A DNA stretch of 58,523 bases, the filler included, from Sluysia triapertura (lineage: Eukaryota): NCBI GenBank assembly GCA_046118255.1. It is 4 parts of 4 records of this genome, joined end to end, with 100 filler letters (N's around TTAATTAATTAA, not from the genome) between each part and the next. Parts side by side here need not be neighbours in the genome. Positions count along the whole stretch, not along the records: positions 30,137 to 46,043 come from JBJNIA010215253.1; 3 more parts are not named here. One strand, written 5' to 3'. Below are positions 30,137 to 46,043 of the stretch, piece after piece. The notes beneath the pieces were generated by a model. It was not told where the DNA came from. It worked only from the letters and a program-made list of their open reading frames with translations, and ran no database searches. The position numbers were made by a program, and so were the translations under genes. Each line of letters begins with the position of its first letter. Positions within the stretch are counted from its first letter, which is position 1.

Positions 30137-30500
30137 TTCTATTTCTGAGGTATTTGTTGACGTTATTGAATGGTGTTATTGTGTTTATGATTTGTGTATT
30201 GTATATTGTGGTTGTTGTTTTTTTGAAGAGATAGCTTTTGAGTGAATGTTGTGAATTATTCGAGATTAATTATCAAAATAATGTGTGGAGTAAATGATTG
30301 AAAGTGTTACTCGGGTTGTTGTTAAATATGAGTTGTTAAGATGTTATGAATGTGTAGTATTGTTTATGGTGATTGATTTGATGTAGTTCGATAGTACGAA
30401 ATGTGATTGTTTTGGAAATTATATTTTAGTGAACTTTTGGGTTATGAATGTTGGATGCGATGTTTTAATAAATTTTAGGTTGTGAGTGTTGGCCACTACA
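30137..30500 (-). mobile_element. Copy of the TGTAGTGGCCAAC LTR-like repeat
   Basis: GTTGGCCACTACA ends at 30500. GT-rich on +, truncated by the contig edge. Confidence 0.65.
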
Positions 30501-31235
30501 GTAACTAATCACAATTTTAACCAGATCTTTTTGTCATATATCATTAAGGCTATCCTTAGTATAAATGTCGTATTACGACCTGAAAATTCTAACCTAACTA
30601 GAAATTTCTTAATTAAAACCAAACACGCTTATTTCTTCAGAGGTCCAAATTATTTAAGGAATCATTCGGTACTAGAAACTTATAAAACCATCAATTGGTA
30701 TAAACTATGTAAAATTAATCATTTAAAAATTTATTCAGTTCAAAAACATAAACTTTTAAAATCATCATCACAACATCATAATATCATCGACCACCTAAAA
30801 TGGTGTCAGAAGTATAAAAGGACCCCACTACATTTGTTGCACTCTACGGATCCAGGTTTGTTTATTTATATATATGAATACGTGAAACTTTTATATTATA
30901 AACCCGATTCCATCATTGAAAAATATATACATAGATGCAATTTTTATAGCAACGATATTAATAACAACATTACGCTAATCTTTCATGATGAAGTCGCAAA
31001 TAAATGTGATAATATAATTATGTGCAAGATGAATGAGTGTAATGAATTCCTTAAAACTTACAATACTAATTTTTCTCGTAAAAATAATCAAAATGATCAC
31101 CAACTTAATATATTTAATAATTCCATTGAAAGCTCAAACAATTATATTTTTGCTAACAAAAATATAAACTATTCGACAAATCTAAAGAACAAACATGTTA
31201 TCTTTCAACTACAAAATACATCTTGGCGTATTTAA
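30486..31235 (+). mobile_element. 249-codon ORF, possibly the N-terminal region of a Penelope-like retroelement ORF
   Basis: Longest ORF in the window. HHNIIDHLKWCQKYKRTPLHL resembles the H..FL..C......P..L motif at the N-terminus of Penelope-like ORFs. It is bracketed by two copies of the TGTAGTGGCC repeat. Confidence 0.35.
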
Positions 31236-31510
31236 AATGTTGTTGAATGTTGTGATTTAAATATTTTGTGTTGTGTTTGTAATTTGGTTTGAGAAGATGA
31301 CTATTGAGTGAATGTTATGGATTGTTTCGCATTAGTTAACAAAGTGTGGTATGAGATGGATGGTTGAGAATATTAGACGAGTTGTTTAAGAAGTATATGT
31401 TGTTGAAATATTACGAACTAATTGTTGTAGTTTGGTAATGTTGAATGTGATTGTGATTTGAGTGTTATAATGTTTTAGTGAATTTTAAATTATGGGTGTT
31501 AGCCATTACA
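31236..31510 (-). mobile_element. Copy of the TGTAGTGGCCAAC LTR-like repeat
   Basis: GTTAGCCATTACA ends at 31510. Shares blocks such as TGAAGA..TGAGTGAATGTT and TTTTAGTGAA with the 30137-30500 copy. Confidence 0.65.
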
Positions 31511-31523
31511 CCTAATTAGTATA

Positions 31524-31590
31524 ATTGACTATAATAAAATAAAATTGTTAGATGGGTTGATAACTCAGTGGTCAGTCCATTTTATGAAGT
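31524..31590 (+). repeat. Second, more deleted copy of the tRNA-containing repeat
   Basis: Same 5' flank ATTGACTATAATAAAATAAAATTGTTAGATG and 3' GGTCAGTCCATTTTATGAAGT as 23583-23676. Confidence 0.75.
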
Positions 31591-31591
<1 letters not shown>

Positions 31592-31648
<57 letters not shown>

Positions 31649-31667
31649 CAACAACAACAACAACAAT
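31592..31667. repeat. (AAT)n(AAC)n microsatellite
   Basis: Seen directly; it immediately follows the tRNA-derived repeat. Confidence 0.95.
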
Positions 31668-31959
31668 GAATTGAATTGCATAAACTTCTTATACTTATTT
31701 CTCTATAATTTAAAAATTCTTGTTTTCTACTGATCTTTCTTAAAAGATTGCTTATTTCTTAGATAAAATAATAAGATGAATTCCTTATTACGTATGCTTC
31801 TATTCCTTACTTATTTCTGTTTCTGTTACATAATTCTGTTTATTTCATATATTTTTCTCTTCAAATTCGTTTACATTTCTTAATTATTATTGTTTTTTAA
31901 ACAGCATTATGCAGTAATAAAAAAAGTAACAACGTAGTTGAAGGTATTAAAAGAAATTT

Positions 31960-32136
31960 CATTTTGATTATAATGATGTTTAGATGAGCTTTTCAAATGT
32001 AAATTTAATGTTTTTCAATAATATTAAGGATTTGGATGTTGAAGAACTGTGAATTTAAAAAGTTTTAAAGTATCTAAAATTTTGATGAGTCTAAAAAAGT
32101 AAAATGTGATTTTAAGTAATAATGTTGGCCACCACA
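31960..32136 (-). mobile_element. Partial copy of the same LTR-like repeat family
   Basis: GTTGGCCACCACA at 32124-32136. Shares TTGGATGTTGAA..TGTGAATTTAAA with the 36.6-37.07 kb copy. Confidence 0.55.
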
Positions 32137-32504
32137 TATTTTCAATTTTCGAAATTGAAATCTCCTTATAATAATAAATCTTACCAAATAACCAAGTAAA
32201 CGGATGAGTAATATCCTTTAAAGCTGGCTGAAACCGAATTAATTAAATCAAAATGGCGCATCAACTTAAATGAAATTGTGACCTGTAAAATTTTATCTAA
32301 TTTGAATAACTAAAATAAATTGTGTGGCAAATTGAACTGATTCTAGCTTATATACTAGTCATCAGCCAATAGGAATCGATGGATTGTTTTGTTCTATTTT
32401 TAGAAGCTTATTTTCTTTTTTCGAAATTTTATTTTCTTTTTGGAAACAAATATTTTTTGGTGATTTGGAGCTAAATTTTTTAATGATATTTTACATAATT
32501 TTAG

Positions 32505-32539
32505 AGGGTTGCGATGGCTTCTAAGAAGCTTCATATTTC
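32505..32539 (+). CDS. Possible small upstream exon of the ENTPD-like gene (RVAMASKKLHIS)
   Basis: ttttag|AGG GTT GCG ATG...ATT TC|gt, followed by a 45-nt pyrimidine-rich intron ending cttag that keeps phase with the 32585 exon. Confidence 0.4.
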
Positions 32540-32584
32540 GTATTTTTTTGAATTTGCTTTATTTAATTTTCTCGCTTTACTTAG

Positions 32585-32961
32585 CTTATGTACATATTCA
32601 GGTTTACTGTACAAAATTGTATCACCCTGCCTACCTTCTGATTTCCGTGGAATTCTGTATCATCATGGACATCAGTATTCATTATCCGGTGCCGCTTTCA
32701 ATTCATCGCCATCATCACAATTCGATTCATGTTACCAAAGTGCTAAACAATTGATTAGCAATTATATACAAACCAAAAATCCTACAATGGCTACTGTGAT
32801 GTCTCATGCTCATTTATCTGGAGAATCGTCTTCAATGGTACATTTCTTTTTGTTTGGATATTTCTACGATCGAATATTCGATTTTTATGAATTTTTCCAT
32901 CAAAATGACATATTACCACGTGAAATATCTGTAAATAGTTATTACGAGTATGCCCAAATAG
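32585..32961 (+). CDS. Nucleoside diphosphatase/apyrase (GDA1/CD39 family, ENTPD5/6-like), internal exon
   Basis: Encodes IVSPCLP...YHHGHQYSLSG...FDSCYQSAKQLI...FFLFGYFYDRI...ISVNSYYEYAQI, resembling ENTPD5/6 SPCLP..KYQYGG..FEPCY..FYAFSYYYDR..VEDFERKA. Donor ATAG|gttatt at 32962. The acceptor is cttag (32584), or alternatively ttcag (32601). Confidence 0.85.
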
Positions 32962-33243
32962 GTTATTATTTATTAATTATTGTTATTTGGTTCATTTTCA
33001 TATTTTATGAACAAAGTCGTTTTATCTAAGTAATTATTAAAATGATTCAATTTAGCATTATATATTTCATCACTTAGTGGCACAATTGCGTTACGATTTA
33101 CTTCTGCATAGATATATTCTTTTATAATCTGTCAAACAGAAGAAACTCATTCTGGTTCTTACCGATGTCAAGTTGTAGATATTCCATGAAATTAAAAGTA
33201 GAGGTTATTTTAAAAATCAGAAACTATAAAGCGTATTTTTCGA

Positions 33244-33376
33244 TAAGGACAGTTACCAGTGCACGGACAGCGACGGCTATAGCCGTTTTCTCGATATTCA
33301 TGCTGTGACAAGACGACGGCAATAGTTAAAACGTGATTTAATTCTCAACGGCAATAGCGGTAGTCTGTTTGCCTTA
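33244..33376. mobile_element. Small MITE-like element in the ENTPD intron
   Basis: Imperfect TIRs (TAAGG-ACAGTTACC / GGTAGTCTGTTTGCCTTA). Three ACGGC(T/A)ATAG units, one a perfect 14-bp palindrome ACGGCTATAGCCGT (33273-33286). Confidence 0.45.
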
Positions 33377-33734
33377 ATTCTTCATACATACATGAATCAT
33401 GTCACCATAGAGAACAAGGTACAAATCACAAGTTTGTACAAATCTGCATAAACCTGACGTTTATACGATAAAAATCAATGTTTTGTCACAAACATGTTAA
33501 TTATTTCAACAAAGAATATTGGATGCTCAATAAAAACAATCCATTTATCAAACGCCACTACTTGATTTACTCAGTAAGAAGTTTATTCGAAATGTTATTA
33601 CTACTCTGTTTCAAATAGGAAGGTTGTAAGTAGGGATAAAAAATTAGTCGATATGATACAAAGATATCGATATTAAAAAGATTATGCTGTCTTTTTAATT
33701 TGTATTTATTATTATTATTATTATTCTTATTAAG

Positions 33735-33841
33735 CATGTTCTAGTAACAAGAAATATAGTCCGTATCAATGTGCTGATCTCTCGTTTATTTATTCGCTCT
33801 TAAAAGATGGTCTACGGTTGGACAACAACACACGTTTGCAT
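33735..33841 (+). CDS. ENTPD5/6-like apyrase, next exon
   Basis: taag|CA TGT...CAT|gttaat joins the previous exon in phase, giving (I)ACSSNKKYSPYQCADLSFIYSLLKDGLRLDNNTRLH. Compare ENTPD5 VC...[28 protein letters not shown]. Confidence 0.88.
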
Positions 33842-36639
33842 GTTAATTTTATTTTATAAATTTATCATTTATTGCTTTCTTAGCTTAATTTAAAAATTCA
33901 TTTCTAAAACAACTATTTTAAGTATTAAATTATACAAAAATATGACATTGTTTTTGTCAAATATGCACACATTTGTTGAATGTTAATTTTTTATCTCTTT
34001 GATTGATTATGTCAGTTTCCTGATCCCCATGATTATTTAGATGATATTTTATCTTAAGTTATTATAGGAATTTTTTGGAAATTGGATTTTAAAAATATAT
34101 TTATAAGTGTTCCCAACTGCCCACTTTTTCTCATCAATCATAGTTGTTTACATTTACTTGATTATTGTAAATAATATAAATACATTATTAAACAAATGGT
34201 TTACTCTGCTTACTCTACCTGTATTTTTATTTTGTAATTGACACATTTTTCCGACTTCAGTTAATTGAATTTGACTGTAAACCCTGTTTTGTTTAAAGCA
34301 GATATTGTTATAGTTTTTATTGTTTATTATTATAATAGTGACAGTTCTCTACACACTTTACATTATAATTCTGGTCACATTTATATCCAATTTGTTGATG
34401 TGTATTTATCAGTGTTATTTATTCTATTCTATATTGTATTAATTTATATTAGTTTAATTTTAATTTGTTATAGTAGGCTTTACTTTAATTTTTATTAAAA
34501 TTTATTCTGTTTTGTGACTGTCTACTTTAATATAAAATTTTCAACTTCGGGGTAATGTGTAAACTTTATAATTTTTATTTTTTATTGTAAAAACTTGTAA
34601 CTTTTATAAGGATATGTTAATAATGATGCGAAAATTAAAGAATATATGAAATTCACTATATAAATCTAAATAAGTGTGATTATATATTGTTATTAATAAA
34701 TGAAGGAATGTCTGATATTAATGTATGCATAATCAATGAGCCAACATAATAATGATGAAATTTAATAGCACTGAATAAATATGTATGTTGAATGTGTGAT
34801 AAATTTTATACGAACTATATTCACGAACGAATGTGATAAAAATAAACTATAAGATCTGGTATTCAGGGATATATAATGTTAATATATAACAAATAATAAA
34901 TGTTGCGCTATAACAAATTATGTTAATATCTATAAGCAATGCAGGTTTATAAAAGGATGACTCGTGAATATAATTCGTCTATAATTTCATCGCTTATTCC
35001 GGTATTATTCGGCTTGATCAACTCGAATCAAATTTGAAACGATCGAAATAATTCAACTCGCATTTTTGACTTGCTATTCTAACTAAATACATTTGATTTC
35101 GTACGTGAGTAATTGTTTAATTTTCAACAGTGAACTATTATAAAATTTTGTAGGAATCGTAAATACACCTTCCTTTTAAAAGAAGGTGTAATAATTCATC
35201 ATAATTGTGTTTGTAATCTTTACATAAAAGTAGTCTTATAAAAACAATTAAGGGGATTGAAAACTGAAATTTGTTTAAATCTAATTACAAAAAAATTTAA
35301 TTTAATCACCTTTAATCTTTAAGATCAGAGATGAGTATTGAACTCACTCTTCAAGATTAATTTTATAAGAAAACCGTCGAATAAATTAAACAAGAGACTA
35401 TTTAATCCTATAATGTTGGAAAATAAAATATGAAAAACGAGTGCTTGTGACGTGTGAATAATACCTTTAAAATCTAATGTTTAAAAATAGTGAGCCATAT
35501 TTAAATAAAACGTACTAACAAATAATAAGCTGTAAAATACTGAAAATTATAAAATGTAATACTTTCTATAATGTTTGAATAAATCAAATGTTTAATTAAA
35601 TATTTTAAATGGAACGTATAATAATTATAGTAGCAAATAGTGAGCCATAAACGAAAACTAACGAGGTATGAAAATGAATAAATGATGAGCTATAAAGGAA
35701 TCGATAAATTTAATAGAAAACTGAACGTATGCTAAAAATTATAGTAATAAATCTTTTCGCAATGATTGTTTTTGTCTAAAATGGACAAATGTTTTTTAAA
35801 GATCACGCATTACTGCCATTTATATAAGTTATCGTGATCGTTGTAGAAATTTTGTCAGCTTCAACTTGAATTTTACAATTAGATGATAGATTAGAAATGA
35901 ATACCAATGAGAAGCCCTGTATTCTAATATGCAGTGGAACCTGTCCAATAAAGACTTAATTTTAATTTGGTTTTAAATTTAAAGCCCTCCAAACCTAAAA
36001 TCTTTAAATTTGTAGACTTCAATGTTAAACTTTAAAATTTCAAATCAATCCACATTCACGATAAAGATTTCCCTGGTGTCAGCAACTATTATTGGGCTAT
36101 GGTCTAATTGATATTTGCTTCATGCTACATAAGTGAGTGAAGTGCTTATATTTCTGTGTTAGACTTAAGAAACACAAAGGGTTTAGGGTCACATGTATTT
36201 TGGCTATATTATTGAAAAGAAAAATTTGTAAATTCATATTACCGATTTTTAAATTATAGATATTTATATTAATTTTACCAACATTTTTATAAAATTTCAT
36301 TAATTTATATTCATTCTTTTTAAAAAATTTTAGTTTTAAATTTACTATAAAAGAATTTCAAGTATTATAACATATTTATTTTTATCAAAACTAAGATTGT
36401 TAATGACGTTATAGTTATTGGGCGTAATGTTTTTCGGATACTGCACTGTCTCTTCCTTAGGTTGTAGCATCCTAGAATAAGGAAAATCAAAATTTGTTAA
36501 TGCTTTTAACTTAAATTATTTTAAATAAAATTCTTTTCAGTTCTTTTCTTTTTTGTTTGTGTAAATACTTCATTTCTTTCTTTAAATGCTTTTTAAATTA
36601 TTAGTTCTAATTTTTATTTCCTTTGAAAGAGACTTTATT

Positions 36640-37072
36640 CGGTGATTACAAAGATGTGAATTGTGGAAAGAGTTGATAACAGAATGTTTGAAGGAAATAA
36701 TGCATAACTAAAAATGTTAAAGGTTTTAAAATGTGAATTTAATGTTTTTCAATGATATAAAACGTTGAGTGTTGAAAAACTGAAATTGAATATTTTGGAT
36801 TAATTTCGAAATAGATATTTGATGATTTAAGGTATAATTGTGGTTCTAATGTTATGGGATAATGAATAAAATGTTTTAAATGAATTTTTAAATGTGTATT
36901 GATGGTTTTGAAAGTAAGTATAGTTTGGATGTTGAAAGATTGTGAATTTAAATGTTTTAAAGTATGCAAAGGTTCTAAATAATCTGGGCAGGTAAAATAT
37001 AAAATGTTAATACATGTGATATTGCGAATAAGAAAATTAATCTGAACTTTAAATTAAAGGTTGGCCACAACA
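36640..37072 (-). mobile_element. Copy of the same LTR-like repeat family
   Basis: GTTGGCCACAACA ends at 37072. GT-rich body; the left boundary is approximate. Confidence 0.55.
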
Positions 37073-38273
37073 AAGGGGATATCATTTTTACCACAAAAGC
37101 TGTTAATGCCATTATAAAAAGATGTGCTGTTTATTATTTTTGCTTGTGGATGTGTCACATTGTTGTCTGTACAGAATATATTTTATAAGAAATTAGTAAC
37201 GAGATAATATATAATAAATTAATCGTGTGTCATTATTTTATTTATTTTTATTCTGAATTATTTCATATCCTATGTATTTTAGGAAAAGGAAACGAAATAT
37301 TAAATGTTTATTTTTAAGAAATGGATTGATTTTTCTTTTTGATTATTCTTATACAACTCTGTCTTTTTGTATAATAGTTTTATCTGTCTCTTGCGACGAT
37401 TGTGCTTTTACGAATGCGTCAATCCAGGAAGATAATTTGCCAGCGATATTTTTATGTTTGCTTCTTGATTTGTCTAATAAAATATTCATCTTTTGTAATT
37501 TCTACCTGTAATTAAAGTTTTATTATTTGATTAACCGTTACTTTGTAATTCTAATATTATTAAAATACAAATTTAATCATGAAACAGAATAAAATAACCA
37601 AAAATAACATATAAACACAAAAATACATAAAATATAAAACATATATAAAACGTATAAACATCTAATTACATATTCAGAAAAATCTGCCATTCAAACCATT
37701 AATTAAACACAATATGCAATGTTTTATTAATTACAATTTCAGTAAATAATTTAAGAGTAAAAAAGTAATTTAATAATTTCAATGATTTTATTTCTAGCTT
37801 AAACTAGAATCAAATAAGTTAGATTTTAAGTCGTATTTTATGACTTTACGTATAAAAATAAAAAATCCAACTATAAGAAACTTACAGAATCTATTGTTAG
37901 CCTCTCGAGAATTCTCTAGATATCTTCAATCAAATAGTTTCTTATTACGTAGATAGAATACTTCAACTTAATTTTACTTGTCCAATCAAAATTTCTTTAA
38001 AAAACTTTAGAACTTTCTCCAATCTATTGATGTTCCTTGCTAACAAATTACTATTTTTAACCTAAAATCTATTGTTATTTGTGAGTTTAGGTTTATTTAT
38101 ACTAACTTCAATTATAATTTTAAGAACAAATGTTTAATTGTTCACTTATATGAAAAATTAGTTAAAATTGTTAATTTAAAATTTAAAATAATAGTCTTAC
38201 AAATGCTTACTCTAATAGGAAGATTTGTCCTCAAATGAAAATAAATGTTGATTATAAAATGAAATCACGAATG

Positions 38274-38449
38274 TGTAGTGGCCAACTCAATGATTTGAAA
38301 TTTTATTCTAATAACACATTACAAAATCACTATTCAAAACATTTCATAATTCTAAACACTTCTAAACATAAAATTTCATAACATCAGATTCACATTCAAT
38401 ACCGAAAATCATCAAAGATTTACTTAAAAAGTTAATCCAAAATACTGCA
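38274..38449 (+). mobile_element. 5' fragment of the same LTR-like repeat, interrupted at 38450
   Basis: TGTAGTGGCCAAC at 38274, CA-rich up to about 38449. Confidence 0.55.
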
Positions 38450-39241
38450 TGTGGGGAAGGCTTTTTATATTTTACTATTATCAAATTATAATTATTTTCA
38501 TTTGTCTTTATATTATAAAGGTTAAAAAATTTCATTAACGAGAAACGATTAAAATTTAGCATTAAAACTATAACAAATTTTTTAATTATCAAACTGTAAA
38601 TAAAGAACGAATAAAAGGTTTAATAACGAAATATTGAAATTCAAAGTAATCATTTTCTGTAAAAATAGGTCTTAATGAAGGTAAAATTTGGGTAATAAAA
38701 TAGGTTCCATATAGAGGATGATTAATTTGAGTAAAGTTTTTAAATGAACAAGTCAAATTGGTTGACATCGAAAAATTAAAGTTGCAATTGTTGATAAATT
38801 CTGCTGCCACATATTGCATTAGTGTCAAGTCCTTCTACATCAATAGACATACTGAAGCATAATTTGAGTAATCATATAATTCACTGTTATTATTAAGAAA
38901 AACGTGTGATAAATTTGTCAATGTTTTGAATTTATCACGATATTCCGTTTCAAAAAGATAGCATAATATTCAATAATAATGTCGGTGTAAATATAACAAT
39001 ATCAGGTAGAATAAATGGAAAGGTTGATAATAAGGATAAAGAAATAAAAATGATAACAATAATGTTTTATTATTATATGTTTTAAAATAATGGTATTGTT
39101 GATGTTAATATAAAAGTTATTAAGTGGTAATCGTGGCAATTATATTATACGACAATAATCATAATAATTGTTATATTTTTAATACGACTGGAATTATAGT
39201 TCATGATAATTATGTACAATGGTTATGTTTGTTTTTTGAAT

Positions 39242-39720
39242 GAGTCTAGTAGTTTGTTTAATGTGTTCTGTATAAGTAAGTGATGTTTTTATGTGATGAA
39301 GCATGTATATTTTGATGCGATTTCTCTACACTTTACATAAAATCACATTCCATAACATTTTAACCATTCTTACATCTAAACCTTTTTGCATTTTATTTCC
39401 TTTACTTCCACTAAAACTTATCCTATACTTCTCAGTACATCCCTGTTTCGTACTTCAACATTAAAAATACATAAACTCTCAGTAATAACAGACATCTAAA
39501 AAATTCATAAAGACATTTTACGCATAGTCCTATAACAGCATAACCATAATCACATTTGTTTACATCTTACAACTACCTTTAGAATGTAATAAGACCAGTA
39601 ATATATTTCAATTCTTTCAGATTCTCCAAAATCATTTTTTAATATTATTTTTTCGAACGAGTCTAGTAGTTTGTTTAATGTTCTGCATAAGTAAGTGATG
39701 CTTTTATGTGATGAATCATG
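39242..39720 (+). repeat. Two ~63-bp direct repeats (39242-39305, 39659-39720) flanking a CA-rich insert
   Basis: GAGTCTAGTAGTTTGTTTAATG..TTCTG(T/C)ATAAGTAAGTGATG(T/C)TTTTATGTGATGAA(G/T)CATG occurs twice. Confidence 0.9.
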
Positions 39721-40354
39721 GATAATTCATAAGTTTTCAACATTCAATCATACTTTCAGTCAAAGCATTTTAAAGCCATAATTTTACCACATTTCACAAT
39801 ATTATTTATACTATTAGGCAAAAGAAATAATATGTTAAGAAAGTAGATTAAATTAAAAGGAAGGCTCATGCATTTTAAATTATCACAAATACTCTACATA
39901 ATTTTATTATCATTATTGAAATTATCGTTATTGTTATTATTTGGCCAGCATTTTCAATTACATTTAATTATGCACTCTGTCACCAATCGGCAGCAATCTA
40001 ATTAAATTAATTTACTGTTTCGTTTAAACTGTTGATTGATGACAGATTCCAAGTTAATTTGCTTGTCACCATTTAACTATCTTAACTCTTTAGTAGTATG
40101 GTGACAAGCATGCATTGATGCAATCATGTTTATGTTGTATGACAATTGATTGGATGTCCAATCAAGTCCATCTCATCACTGCAGTTCTATCTATTGGGAT
40201 TACTCATCCAATCAGTGTAATCCACCTTTTTAATAATGGTAAGTGAAATATTGATTTTTATAGCACTATTTATCATTTATAAAGAATTAACGGCTGATCT
40301 TATTAAATATTTACTATATTCCGTATTTAAGTGTAAAGGATAAATAAATGAAAA

Positions 40355-40816
40355 TTGTTTTTACACGATATGTCTACGATAACAGAAAACTTATCAAAAA
40401 TTAGTGGATCCTTTTTATTTGAACCGCAAGACTATGTTGAACTTAGTAAAGTCGAAATTCAATTTATATTTGATGTGTTAATTTATGTTAATGAAACTAG
40501 TACACCAGAAGAAATTTTAGATTGTAATTCAGTTCTACGGCTTAGATTCCTTAAGAAGCTGTCTGAACAGAATGATAGCTATGATTTTGAAATTTCGTTA
40601 AAGTTATGTATAGACAGAACAATCAATATGGTATCATTCCCAATTCTTATGGATGAATTATTTAGTCATATTTGTATTTCTTATGAAACTGGATATGTTG
40701 GCAAAGATTTTCTTGATATCAATAGAAAAATATTGAATCGAATTAAGATTGAAATTGAAAAAGATGAAGAAGCTATGTTATTAAAAGATTATTTAAATTA
40801 TTTAAAATGTAATTAA
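40355..40816 (+). CDS. Intronless orphan ORF, 153 aa, acidic/helical (first ATG near 40370)
   Basis: Unusually long open frame with protein-like composition for this AT content. A second short ATG frame follows at about 40833. Family not recognised. Confidence 0.5.
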   Translation: MFLHDMSTITENLSKISGSFLFEPQDYVELSKVEIQFIFDVLIYVNETSTPEEILDCNSVLRLRFLKKLSEQNDSYDFEISLKLCIDRTINMVSFPILMDELFSHICISYETGYVGKDFLDINRKILNRIKIEIEKDEEAMLLKDYLNYLKCN

Positions 40817-41336
40817 TATTAAAACTACATATAATGAGTGTAACAGCAAATGTCAAAGCGGAACACAACAGAATGTGGCTAGAAGAATACAAAACTGTTT
40901 TCAGAATTTTGAACGATCAAAAGAAATCAAACCAGGCAGTAATCTTAATGAATACTTAAGTAAAACTCTTCAAAAGTCTCATTTATTAGGAAAATTTTGA
41001 TCATACTTAATTTAGACTTACCTGATGATTTAAAGTATTTTAAGTCATTTAATATTGATATATATGACGTAGGAATAAAAATTGCTTTTCAATTTTTAAT
41101 GTGCTGATTTATTTGAAACTATATGAAAATGTGGCGTTAAAACCCAAGTTTAAAACGATTTTTGTTACTGTATTATTTTTTCTACGTAATCAGTATAAAA
41201 TAATATATAAAATAATAGCTCAATTAATTATCAACAATATAGTTAATTTAAAAACTTTTTGGTGATTTTGTCATTAATGTACGCAGCGTGATTAGTAAAA
41301 ATTTGTGGAATTTTAAATTAAAAAATACATTACTAA

Positions 41337-41680
41337 ATATCTCACGAGAAATATAAAAATTTAAACAGTTTTGACGATGATTATAATTATGAAGATTATT
41401 ATGACGACGATGATCATCATCTAACTCATATGCATGGTGATTTATCAAATGATAGTAGATTGAGAAAGAATCGTTATAGTCAATCAGAAAGAAAGCGAAA
41501 AGTTAGTATTAAAAGTAGTTATAGAGAATTACGTGAGGATATTCCAACTTTGAGGGATAATGAGGGATCGCCTTCACTTATGTTGCAAAAAGCTGTTGAA
41601 TAAGTAAAGGAAATAAACATGTTAATTTAGAAAATAAATACTGTGCAATGGAGCAACAACTACAATATTTGTTGTTACCA
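41337..41680 (+). pseudogene. Max-like bHLH-leucine zipper, disrupted
   Basis: Acidic leader (FDDDYNYEDYYDDDD), then RKNRYSQSERKRKVSIKSSYRELREDIPTLRDNEGSPSLMLQKAVE*VKE, then after a frameshift NLENKYCAMEQQLQYL. Compare Max [50 protein letters not shown]...LEQQVRAL. TAA at 41601 replaces the conserved Tyr. Confidence 0.8.
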
Positions 41681-41840
41681 ACAATGTATACTGATATTAG
41701 CAAGGCAGTGGTTTTACCAGCTGGTTCTAGTTCAAATAACACTCACGGTGTTGTGCTAAACTGTAATACAAACGCCTAATATTTCCACAGGACCAATTAG
41801 TAATAATCAAGTTTTATCGGTTACTGCTACTCATCCAGGA

Positions 41841-42167
41841 TTGGGTTGTGTGACAAATGATGATAAGCACGCAAGTTATTTTTCGAATCGAAAAAGTCAT
41901 CATTATTCTCGTAGAAAGTTTAATGAAAAAGAAGATGATAATAAATCACGTCTTTTTAAATCCACATTATGTATGTATGAAACTTCGATAACAGGCCAAT
42001 GCATCAAGAATGGAAAATTTTGTCCCTCTGCTCACGGATTATATGAATTAGTACCAATTCCTGGTGTCAAATCAATCAATCTTTTGTGCTCACAAATTGA
42101 TGAATCAGAAATTAACTTAACAACACAAAAATACTTTGACAACAAAACTTTTTTAAAGTTCAAATGA
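41841..42167 (+). pseudogene. ZFP36/TIS11-type CCCH zinc-finger ORF (single finger), probably the 3' part of the Max-like frame
   Basis: RLFKSTLCMYETSITGQCIKNGKFCPSAHGLYEL is C-x9-C-x6-C-x3-H with a lead-in and AHG..EL tail like RYKTELC...CQFAHGLGEL. The finger lies at 41970-42035. Confidence 0.75.
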
Positions 42168-42389
42168 AGAGATGACCGTAGCATATCCAAGCATTTTAAA
42201 ACAATTTCTATTAGCAAAATGTTACCACATAAAACAAAATATTAATATATGCTTATTTACTGTAATTAATGAATGTATTCAGCATTGTATTAATCTTATT
42301 TTTAATAAATTTCAAATTTGTTAATTTAATAATAATTATAAAACATACAATTAATCACAATACCCCCAAAATCCATATTTATTTTGCAT

Positions 42390-42791
42390 AACTATATCGT
42401 CGAAATTGGTAATAACATCCATCCCATCTATTAATTCAAATGGACTATTATCCCATACATTTATTGGCACCACTATGCATTCGTTTAAAACTGATACTAG
42501 ACACTAATATCCCATTGATATTTATGGGCATGTGGTTAACATCGTAAACTAGAGTATTTAATTTATTTAACAAAGTCATTTCCCAGGTGTTTAAAATACT
42601 GATGTATCTATTACGGCTCTTATCCACCTGCCATTTAAATTTATGTTCTGAAATATATGAATTCGAAAATTCAATGAAGAGTTTATTATCATTAATACCT
42701 CTTTCTTTTTAACACATCTATTTCTTAGATTATATTCCAATTTACACCTGTTAGTGCGTACCACAAATGTTTCGGTGTTTATTTGGATCAT
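42390..42791 (-). pseudogene. Degenerate retropepsin-like aspartic protease
   Basis: NINLNGRWIRAVIDTSV resembles ING..V.ALIDTGA. Downstream, after stops/frameshifts, VPINVWDNSPFELIDGMDVI resembles DLILGMD. Confidence 0.65.
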
Positions 42792-43339
42792 TGATAAATA
42801 AATTAGCGGGTGCAGTTTTCATAACTTCATAGGGACTGTTGAACGATTTATTCAGTTTGGAGTGTTGTGATTTAAACAATAGGTGTAATCAACTAATAAT
42901 TCTTACTTAAAACCTTAATATTTCATCTTCTATAATTACTGAATCTTTCAACAAGTTATACTTAATATTTTGATTGTTATACACAATTATAGTTTTAATT
43001 ATTCAAGACTCATCATTTTGACCATTGTTTTATGCCTTACAGTTATGTTTGTTAAGACATGCCCGAATAAAAATATAAAAATATTTTAAATAGTTTAATT
43101 TAATTCAGTTTTTTTATTATATTAATCGTTGTTTTATTTAATAATCTATATCATTTTTAATTCTTTATGTCAGTTGAAAACTTTTATATTATATCTCTTT
43201 AATGACTTAATATAAATTTGTCCTGGGAGTTGAGTTAATACTCGTTTCTGTTGTTAAAGATGGAAATGCAATTTGTGATTATTGGTAGCCTTAAATCTTA
43301 TTCATCAATCCCGAATAATAAATTCAAATGACAAAGCAG

Positions 43340-43470
43340 CTACTAAATATTTAGTATTGTTTATTAATTCAAATGGATAAGAATGCTTCAATCGAATAAT
43401 TAAATAATTGTTATTGATAATCAATGAAATATCTCCAATTTGATATTAAAAATTATGGTGTTTTTTGATC
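43340..43470 (-). mobile_element. Possible gypsy integrase C-terminal (GPY/F) remnant
   Basis: NYQIGDISLIINN...RLKHSYPFELI resembles F.IGD.VL..N...KL...Y.GPF.I. Confidence 0.4.
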
Positions 43471-43803
43471 ATAAAAATTCTACATAGGTACATATTTTAA
43501 ATTTATTACATACATTTTAATATAGTTACAAATTATACAACAAATTTATTACAGTTTACAATTATTAATGAATTTTTACAAATATTAGTAATAAATTTTG
43601 ATACAATTCATATTAAAAAATTTTAATGAGTTTTAATACATATGGTTTATGGAATAACAATTTTAATAAGATCGGTTATATTATTGGAACAGTATGCTTA
43701 ATTTAAACTGATTATAATCGAAAGACTCATTAAATTATTTATATCATGACGAATTGATTATTTCGTCGGTATCCGTAATTATGATTACATTAACTTCTAT
43801 CAA

Positions 43804-44408
43804 AATTTACTTAGCACAATCAATAACGTAATTAATAGTTGCATAAAAAATAATAATCATTTAATAATAGTAATATCAATAATGAGCATATATTGACTTT
43901 CTTAATATATTCTTTAATATTGATATTTCGGTAACACAATATCTTTCATAATCTGTGTAACAATCATATAACATGTTCTTTTAATTATATATAAATTTAT
44001 GAGGTCTAAAATACAACATAAATTGTATTACCAAAAGTGTAAATATGAATTATATCGATAATGGTACAATAAATTAATTGTACGTTTTTTCATTTAATTT
44101 ATAATTTATTCGTTTGGATCTTTTATTGATAGTTCATTAAAATTGTTTGAAATACTAAATGAAGTAATGTGACTTTCTGAACCAATTTCACCAATAAATT
44201 ATCTTAATTAGGTTTCAATTAGGTTCACTAAATATAAGATCTGTGATTTCGAGTTTGGCGGTCGAACTAGTTTGTAAAATCTAGATTTGCACTACCATTT
44301 AATGTAATACATAAACTTTATACTCGAATTTATTAATAAATGGCTTTCTCGAAAATCTACGTTGAGTATATATCGTCCTAGCATGTATGAATTTAAGATG
44401 AAAATATT
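43804..44408 (+). repeat. ~600-bp direct repeat, copy A
   Basis: Near-identical blocks with 45093-45786, e.g. AATTTATTCGTTTGGATCTTTTATTGATAG and TTTGGCGGTCGAACTAG. Confidence 0.92.
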
Positions 44409-45092
44409 GCTAAAAGAGAAATTAACCTATAATTCGATAAAACTAATTAATGTTTTATAAATATTTGAGTTGTAAGTAGTACGTTGTGCCTCTGTATTTT
44501 AGTTCATTGTTTTTTAAATATTATTAAGTGCTTTAAAATACAATAGGCATTAAATTAGTTTAAGTTTAGTTTCTTTACAATGTTACTTTTTAACTTGTTT
44601 GTGATTGGAAGGACGAAAGTATACATTTTGTTTCACTTAATTCACTAGGATGTATGTAATAAATTTAATGTATACATATGTAAACACATACGTAGTACTG
44701 CGCACTACAGGCACTTGTATGGCAAATAAGGTGTTTTTGAATTCTTTTCTCTAATAATTTTTCCTTTAGTTAATTTCTATTATATGGGCAATTTCTTTCT
44801 ATAGTTACGATGAAGTTTCTACTAATGAAAGAAATCTATGATCATAAATGGAAAACTTAACTTAATGAGTTCGCTCTTTCACAAATCTTACAGTAAATGA
44901 TTTGTCGATATGATTTGCAATGTTACAGTTTCATGACAAAGATGGAGCGAAAATAATATGTAGTAGAGTTACAGTAAAGACATAGCTCGAAATTAGTTTA
45001 TAATTTTCAAAGTCTTTCGTCTATATTAATTCAACGGTGACCAGACTTTAATTTTCTTTATAAAATGAGGTATTACATTAATTTCTATTATT

Positions 45093-45786
45093 AATTTACT
45101 TACCACATAATCAATAACGTAATTAATAGTTGCATAATTAATTATAATATAAAAAATAATAATCATATAATAATAGTAACATTAATAATGAGAATATTGC
45201 TTTTATTAATATATTTTTTAATATTGATATTTTATTTACACTTTCGATAACACATCTTTCATAATCTGTATAACATCATACAGCGTGCTATGTATATAAA
45301 TTTATGAAGTCTAAAATGCAACAGAAATTGTATTACCAAAAATGTAAATATCAATTGGAATATCAAACATTACAAAATGTATCGATAATGGTATAGAAAA
45401 TTAATTGTACATTTCTTCATTTAATTTTTAATTTATTCGTTTGGATCTTTTATTGATAGTTCATTAAAATTGTTTGAAATCCTAAATGAAGTAATGTGAC
45501 TTTCTGAACCAATTTCACCAATAAATTATCTTAATTAGGTTTCAATTGCATTTGCGATGGCTTCCGATGGCTTCTGTCACTTCTATGAATGTTTTTTGTT
45601 CTCTAAATATAAGAACTGTGATTTCGAATTTGGCGGTCGAACTAGTTTGTAGAATCTAGATTTGCACTACTATTTAATGTAATGCATAAACTTTATACTC
45701 GAATTTATTAACAAATGGCTTTCTCGAAAATCTACGTTGAGTATAATATGTTGTCCTAACATGTGTGAATTTAAGATTAAAATATT
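45093..45786 (+). repeat. ~600-bp direct repeat, copy B (with small insertions)
   Basis: Matches copy A, with extra sequence at about 45548-45602. Confidence 0.92.
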
Positions 45787-45956
45787 TACCATTAAGTTAT
45801 TAAATGGTTAAAGTCTTAAGGACTGAGAACATTATTTATTAGATTACAGGATCACAAAATAGTCACTATAATCTATATTATCTATACAAACTATTGATAA
45901 AAATTTTGTATCAGAGACTAAAAACATAAAAATAATGATTTAAGCAAAGTGTTTGT

Positions 45957-46043
45957 TGTAGTGGCGAACACTCATAATTAAAATCTATCAAAATATCATA
46001 TTCAACATTTACAAATTAAATTTCACCAAAATTCAAATTTTAA
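45957..46043 (+). mobile_element. 5' fragment of the same LTR-like repeat at the contig end
   Basis: TGTAGTGGCGAACACTCA at 45957. Confidence 0.55.

Follow-up and report, generated by a model that had tools for sequence, protein, structure and literature searches.

The locus at 41337-42167 of the window (the whole stretch of Sluysia triapertura DNA, 58,523 nucleotides with filler included) raises the question of whether a Myc/Max-type bHLH module and a CCCH zinc finger, found close together on one strand, once belonged to a single protein. To our knowledge no known protein pairs a bHLH with a CCCH finger, and none was found in a literature search. A sequence-only reading had proposed a chimeric gene carried as cargo by a mobile element. 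Our analysis leads us to a decayed remnant (pseudogene) of one small lineage-specific eukaryotic bHLH-CCCH gene, to which we give about an even chance. In its undamaged form this gene would have encoded, in one frame, an acidic leader, a Myc/Max-family bHLH, short heptads, an S/T/N-rich linker and an Unkempt finger-3-type finger.

Setting and layout of the locus

The piece of the window that holds the locus (30137-46043; 15.9 kb) has a GC content of 25.5%, carries no case masking and looks like AT-rich eukaryotic nuclear DNA; no tRNA genes or Rfam families were found in it. Long ORFs are scarce. By chance approximately 55 stop-free runs at 45 codons and 15 at 60 codons are expected in the piece, and runs of at least 130 codons number four, compared with 0.04 expected. 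These four are:

30486-31232, plus strand: stop-free run of 249 codons
32505-33026, plus strand: stop-free run of 174 codons
40352-40813, plus strand: stop-free run of 154 codons
41760-42164, plus strand: the finger segment of the locus

The first three, with lengths far above chance, gave no significant Pfam match, and the 249- and 154-codon ORFs gave no homologue in a word-indexed protein search; the 174-codon ORF was examined by Pfam and exact look-up only, and neither gave a match. The 154-codon ORF, on the strand of the bHLH segment and 520 bp upstream of it, is without a significant PDB match and is predicted, at low confidence, to be all-helical (AlphaFold single-sequence pLDDT 46, too poor for a fold search). 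Elsewhere in the piece we noted a perfect (TAA)18 microsatellite at 31592-31645, an 81-nt direct repeat pair at 39232-39312 and 39649-39727 (89% identity, 417 bp apart), a 104-codon stop-free segment on the minus strand at 36742-37053 that has no Pfam match, and short similar stretches at 31979-32073 and 36875-36965 (77%). On the minus strand at 42354-42888, overlapping open segments of 50, 86, 75 and 45 codons form a chain that changes frame; Pfam gave no match for the two longest, and the chain is perhaps a second coding remnant with frameshifts, or else a product of chance.

The features of the locus itself are as follows, where frame 0 denotes the frame of the bHLH and finger segments and frame 2 that of the middle segment:

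41337-41429, plus strand: open leader in frame 0, with a D/Y/E/H-rich acidic run at 41373-41420
41430-41600, plus strand: ATG and Myc/Max-type bHLH (Pfam HLH and PDB phmmer)
~41457-41501, plus strand: basic region
~41502-41543, plus strand: helix 1
~41544-41576, plus strand: loop
41577-41600, plus strand: first half of helix 2
41601-41603, plus strand: in-frame TAA inside helix 2, interrupting frame 0
within ~41604-41630, plus strand: first frame change (0 to 2)
41600-41776, plus strand: frame-2 open segment of 59 codons, with a heptad-like stretch, a Pro and then S/T/N-rich sequence
~41757-41779, plus strand: second frame change (2 to 0), where the frame-2 and frame-0 open segments overlap
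41760-41948, plus strand: S/T/N-rich basic linker of ~63 codons in frame 0, with no Met
41949-42041, plus strand: single CCCH finger, C-x9-C-x6-C-x3-H, with Cys at 41970 and His at 42033-42035
42042-42167, plus strand: C-terminal tail with weak codon signal, and TGA stop (42165-42167)

The bHLH segment and the CCCH finger

The first open segment in frame 0 (41337-41600) comprises 88 codons and is preceded by a stop at 41334-41336; the leader has no in-frame ATG after this stop, the first one being at 41430, and a candidate splice acceptor (aaacag) lies inside the leader at 41366-41368. The acidic character given to the leader by the sequence-only reading is present in its D/Y/E/H-rich run. For the bHLH, the Pfam HLH profile (PF00010) matched residues 43-87 of the 88-aa segment with an E-value of 0.011 and 16.0 bits, under the gathering cut-off of 20.7; of the 53 profile positions the match spans 1-46, ending at the TAA, i.e. 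the scored segment is truncated by the stop. The margin over the best of the spurious Pfam matches from neighbouring ORF segments (E 0.026-0.17) is modest. In a phmmer search against the PDB, all 13 matches obtained at E up to 10 were Myc or Max (E 9e-5 to 3e-3), with ungapped alignments running from the basic region through helix 1 and the loop into helix 2 and reaching the stop or ending at most three residues short of it, whereas control segments of the same piece reached E-values of only 0.19-0.31. The proposed Max-like bHLH is thus borne out by its PDB matches, while the HLH profile, the check that had been suggested, stays below its cut-off.

A reading in which the likeness to bHLH arose by chance in an AT-rich ORF, and only the CCCH finger is real, appears highly improbable to us. 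The sub-threshold Pfam score would fit such a reading, as would the AlphaFold single-sequence model of the segment, which was uninformative (pLDDT 56) and too poor for a fold search, but the uniform and ungapped Myc/Max matches, the much weaker controls and a codon signal that is the strongest in the piece (see below) speak against it. Taken by codon statistics and Myc/Max matches, the 88-aa segment is beyond chance; a word-indexed protein search with it returned no homologue.

Like the Max/Myc/Mxd bHLH-Zip proteins, the locus has a short acidic leader immediately before the basic region, an E-R-K-R core in that region, and heptads that follow; with Max it shares the ungapped alignment from the basic region to the helix-2 stop, Myc and Max being the only PDB matches. 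The basic region had been described as divergent, and in the PDB alignment Tyr, Glu and Lys indeed occupy the positions at which Max has its E-box contacts His, Glu and Arg. Unlike Max, the locus has Tyr and Lys where His and Arg read the E-box (CACGTG). Foreign to the Max/Myc/Mxd family is the C-terminal CCCH finger.

The finger lies in a frame-0 segment (41760-42164) of 135 codons that is significant by length alone. Its C-x9-C-x6-C-x3-H motif at 41970-42035, on the same strand as the bHLH as had been noticed, is the only one in the six frames of the 15.9-kb piece, compared with 0.035 expected in shuffles. In the comparison with zf-CCCH profiles, a check proposed beforehand, the finger scored above threshold; the profile is PF25427 (zf-CCCH_UNK, UNK-like; E=3.4e-10, 40.1 bits with a cut-off of 31.1) and not PF00642, which gave no match from the finger at E up to 10. 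Moreover, the structure 5elh, which contains Unkempt fingers 1-3, was the sole significant PDB match of the segment (E=2e-5), and it is finger 3 that the segment aligns with. When six Unkempt-type proteins were aligned to the segment, identity was 31-37% over 59 residues and 16 columns were invariant, among them the four zinc ligands, K-N-G and A-H-G.

The spacing points the same way: among the 25 proteins that matched the finger segment in our library search (see below), the 9/6 spacing occurs only in the third finger of Unkempt-type proteins, the generic CCCH spacing being 8/5. We accordingly replace the earlier assignment of the finger as ZFP36-type with an Unkempt finger-3 type. The ZFP36/TIS11 family has the lead-in motif YKTELC, and the locus, with R-L-F-K-S-T-L-C before its finger, shares K-[ST]-x-L-C and the CCCH ligand set with this family, but it differs in its 9/6 instead of 8/5 spacing, in having a single and not a tandem finger, and in having no PF00642 match; a ZFP36-type finger is ruled out on these grounds together with the PF25427 match.

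With finger 3 of Unkempt (UNK/UNKL) the locus has the C-x9-C-x6-C-x3-H spacing in common, in addition to the sequence identity given above. Unkempt recognizes RNA through two clusters of CCCH fingers, which read a UAG motif and a U/A-rich trimer (PMC11009413). The locus has one finger, and fingers 1, 2 and 4-6 of Unkempt and its RING are absent; in the Pfam scan PF18384, PF23035, PF23261 and RING gave no match in the locus segments. With the remaining fingers of Unkempt and its RING missing, we regard the finger as a lone finger-3-like module and not as part of an Unkempt gene.

Interruptions and bridge between the two domains

The earlier reading had placed a nonsense change at 41601, and a TAA is confirmed there, in frame 0 and within helix 2, at what we take to be the position of the conserved helix-2 Tyr (from family knowledge and the truncated HLH profile match). 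Past the TAA, frame 0 reads V-K-E-I-N-M-L-I up to a TAG at 41628-41630. Judging from family knowledge and the sequence, V-K-E-I-N fits the end of helix 2, which makes a nonsense change the economical reading.

An uninterrupted helix 2 that continues into a leucine zipper is absent (TAA at 41601, TAG at 41628, heptads in frame 2). What had been called a zipper remnant corresponds to a heptad-like stretch at 41624-41677 in frame 2, consisting of approximately three heptads and ended by a Pro. The stretch exists and such an origin is plausible, but it is not significant by itself: neither it nor the frame-2 segment matched Pfam, the only PDB match of the segment was a weak coiled-coil (E=0.19), and a length of 59 aa is not significant where chance alone would give some 15 runs that reach 60 aa or more. 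The locus differs from Max/Myc/Mxd proteins also in this respect, with helix 2 interrupted and about three, Pro-ended heptads in another frame.

One nonsense codon and two frame changes are thus clustered within ~180 bp. The sequence at both frame changes is rich in A/T, with junction homopolymers of no more than 3-4 bases. As written, the DNA would encode at most 57 residues from the ATG at 41430, without half of helix 2 and everything downstream; as far as this DNA can be read, the copy is broken. At the same time both flanking segments (88 and 135 codons) are fully open beside the three clustered lesions, which is somewhat unexpected for old neutral decay at 25% GC and would also fit assembly errors. 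We consider it rather unlikely that the gene is intact, the stop and the two frame changes being sequencing or assembly errors in a real bHLH-CCCH protein of ~276 residues. The perfectly open and coding-like flanks, the confinement of all lesions to ~180 bp and the A/T-rich, short-homopolymer sequence at the frame changes would agree with this, but one of the lesions is a base substitution to TAA and not an indel, homopolymers of 3-4 bases are short, and no matching protein was found among 1.84 billion representatives or by exact look-ups.

Codon usage was scored by log-odds, for which the three other long ORFs served as training set, stop codons were made neutral and 86 stop-free segments formed the background. 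The leader has 0.54 per codon and the whole bHLH segment 0.366 per codon, each exceeding 86/86 background segments, and nowhere else in the piece is the codon signal as strong as in the latter. The 70-codon stretch ahead of the finger (41760-41969) scores 0.235 per codon, likewise above every background segment. The middle segment has +0.105 in frame 2, where the frame-0 ORF that covers this DNA has -0.288, yet its codon score places it no higher than in the top 10%, and the tail (42036-42164) has 0.04, with 26% of the background segments scoring as high or higher. In a sliding codon score the signal passes from frame 0 to 2 near 41580-41610 and back near 41730-41760. The low-complexity linker described earlier was found, its S/T/N-rich character spanning ~41700-41900.

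The three segments share one strand, and at both junctions each open segment overlaps the one that follows it. Ahead of the finger come 70 stop-free codons without an ATG, the first ATG (41973) being inside the finger; with no Met ahead of it in its segment, the finger would be translatable only by entry from upstream. The span 41337-42164 corresponds to 276 codons, in agreement with the frame of ~275 aa that had been predicted after repair of one stop and two frameshifts. From the sequence, one ancestral frame joining the three segments is favoured, with a moderately supported bridge; the single fused frame proposed earlier follows the 0-2-0 codon path and is plausible but unproven. With one copy and no two-domain homologue found, the case for one ancestral ORF comes entirely from this sequence.

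It could also be that two unrelated fragments, a decayed Max/Myc-like gene or exon and a separate exon or fragment with an Unkempt-like finger, adjoin here and were never one protein, which we judge to be unlikely. Both domains together occur in none of the 25 library proteins retrieved with the finger segment, and the bridging segment is weakly supported, as would be expected from such a juxtaposition; set against it are the common strand, the open frames that overlap at both junctions, the 70 open and coding-like codons without ATG before the finger, and the absence of the other Unkempt fingers and the RING from the piece.

Splicing was considered by enumerating GT-AG introns over the locus. 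A functional gene whose introns remove the lesions would be very unlikely. Open-frame models do exist: one at 41533-41790 has the donor TAC|GTGAGG and the acceptor ttccacag, and a 43-nt candidate intron at 41748-41790 could bridge the second junction only. However, models that skip the TAA destroy the HLH, whose sequence is conserved up to and past the stop, and poor donors are found near 41582 and 41595. Intron rescue was rejected for the reason that every GT-AG model avoiding the TAA removes part or all of helix 2 and relies on poor donors. A code with TAA and TAG as sense codons was rejected as well, the middle part of frame 0 holding 3/53 such codons, equal to the background of 0.062, and the flanking segments 0/223. 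Runs of 150 or more codons free of TGA are abundant, numbering 35 in the piece.

Origin and possible meaning of the locus

The view of the locus as mobile-element cargo found no support in the piece, where neither flanking repeats, a duplication, a second copy nor a transposase or reverse-transcriptase ORF was detected. Specifically, direct and inverted repeats within 40900-42700 were limited to chance-level matches of 11-15 nt and none flanked the locus at the scale of the piece, no second copy of the locus was found in the piece, and 17 stop-free segments, including all five of at least 100 aa, had no Pfam match to transposase, integrase or reverse transcriptase. With terminal repeats, a duplication, a further copy and a transposase all absent from the piece, we regard the mobile-element reading as unsupported. 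A direct repeat of ~630-715 bp is present 1.6 kb downstream of the locus (43784-44408 and 45072-45786; copy starts ~1.3 kb apart, 78% overall identity with blocks of 95%) and does not flank the bHLH-CCCH unit.

Relatives of the finger were sought with HMMER in a library of 1.84 billion protein representatives at E up to 1e-3. The search returned 25 proteins, none of them close, i.e. remote CCCH/Unkempt proteins and low-complexity matches to phage tail-fibre-like proteins, and a Pfam scan of all 25 identified no HLH domain. Exact look-ups of eight ATG-started ORFs gave no entry in the protein collection, and scans of viral, metagenome and prokaryote-genome data gave no homologue, the one viral match being a low-complexity D/H run.

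If the locus is the remnant of a bHLH-CCCH gene, the ancestral protein would probably have dimerised through its HLH and heptads. The Tyr, Glu and Lys found in place of His, Glu and Arg may have changed or weakened its reading of the E-box, and the finger may have added a contact to single-stranded RNA. It is doubtful, in our estimate, that an intact and expressed gene family uniting a Max/Myc-type dimerisation and DNA-binding module with an Unkempt-type RNA-binding finger exists in the organism or one of its close relatives. Since the evidence is one broken copy, the practical value of the locus is that of a lead for the source genome. If such a family is real, it could couple dimerisation within the E-box network to RNA binding, or provide a partner of Myc/Max proteins that does not bind the E-box. 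Finally, an intact copy, should one exist, would represent a new DNA/RNA-binding architecture within the Myc/Max network, and the single Unkempt finger-3 module would be reusable outside its three-finger cluster.
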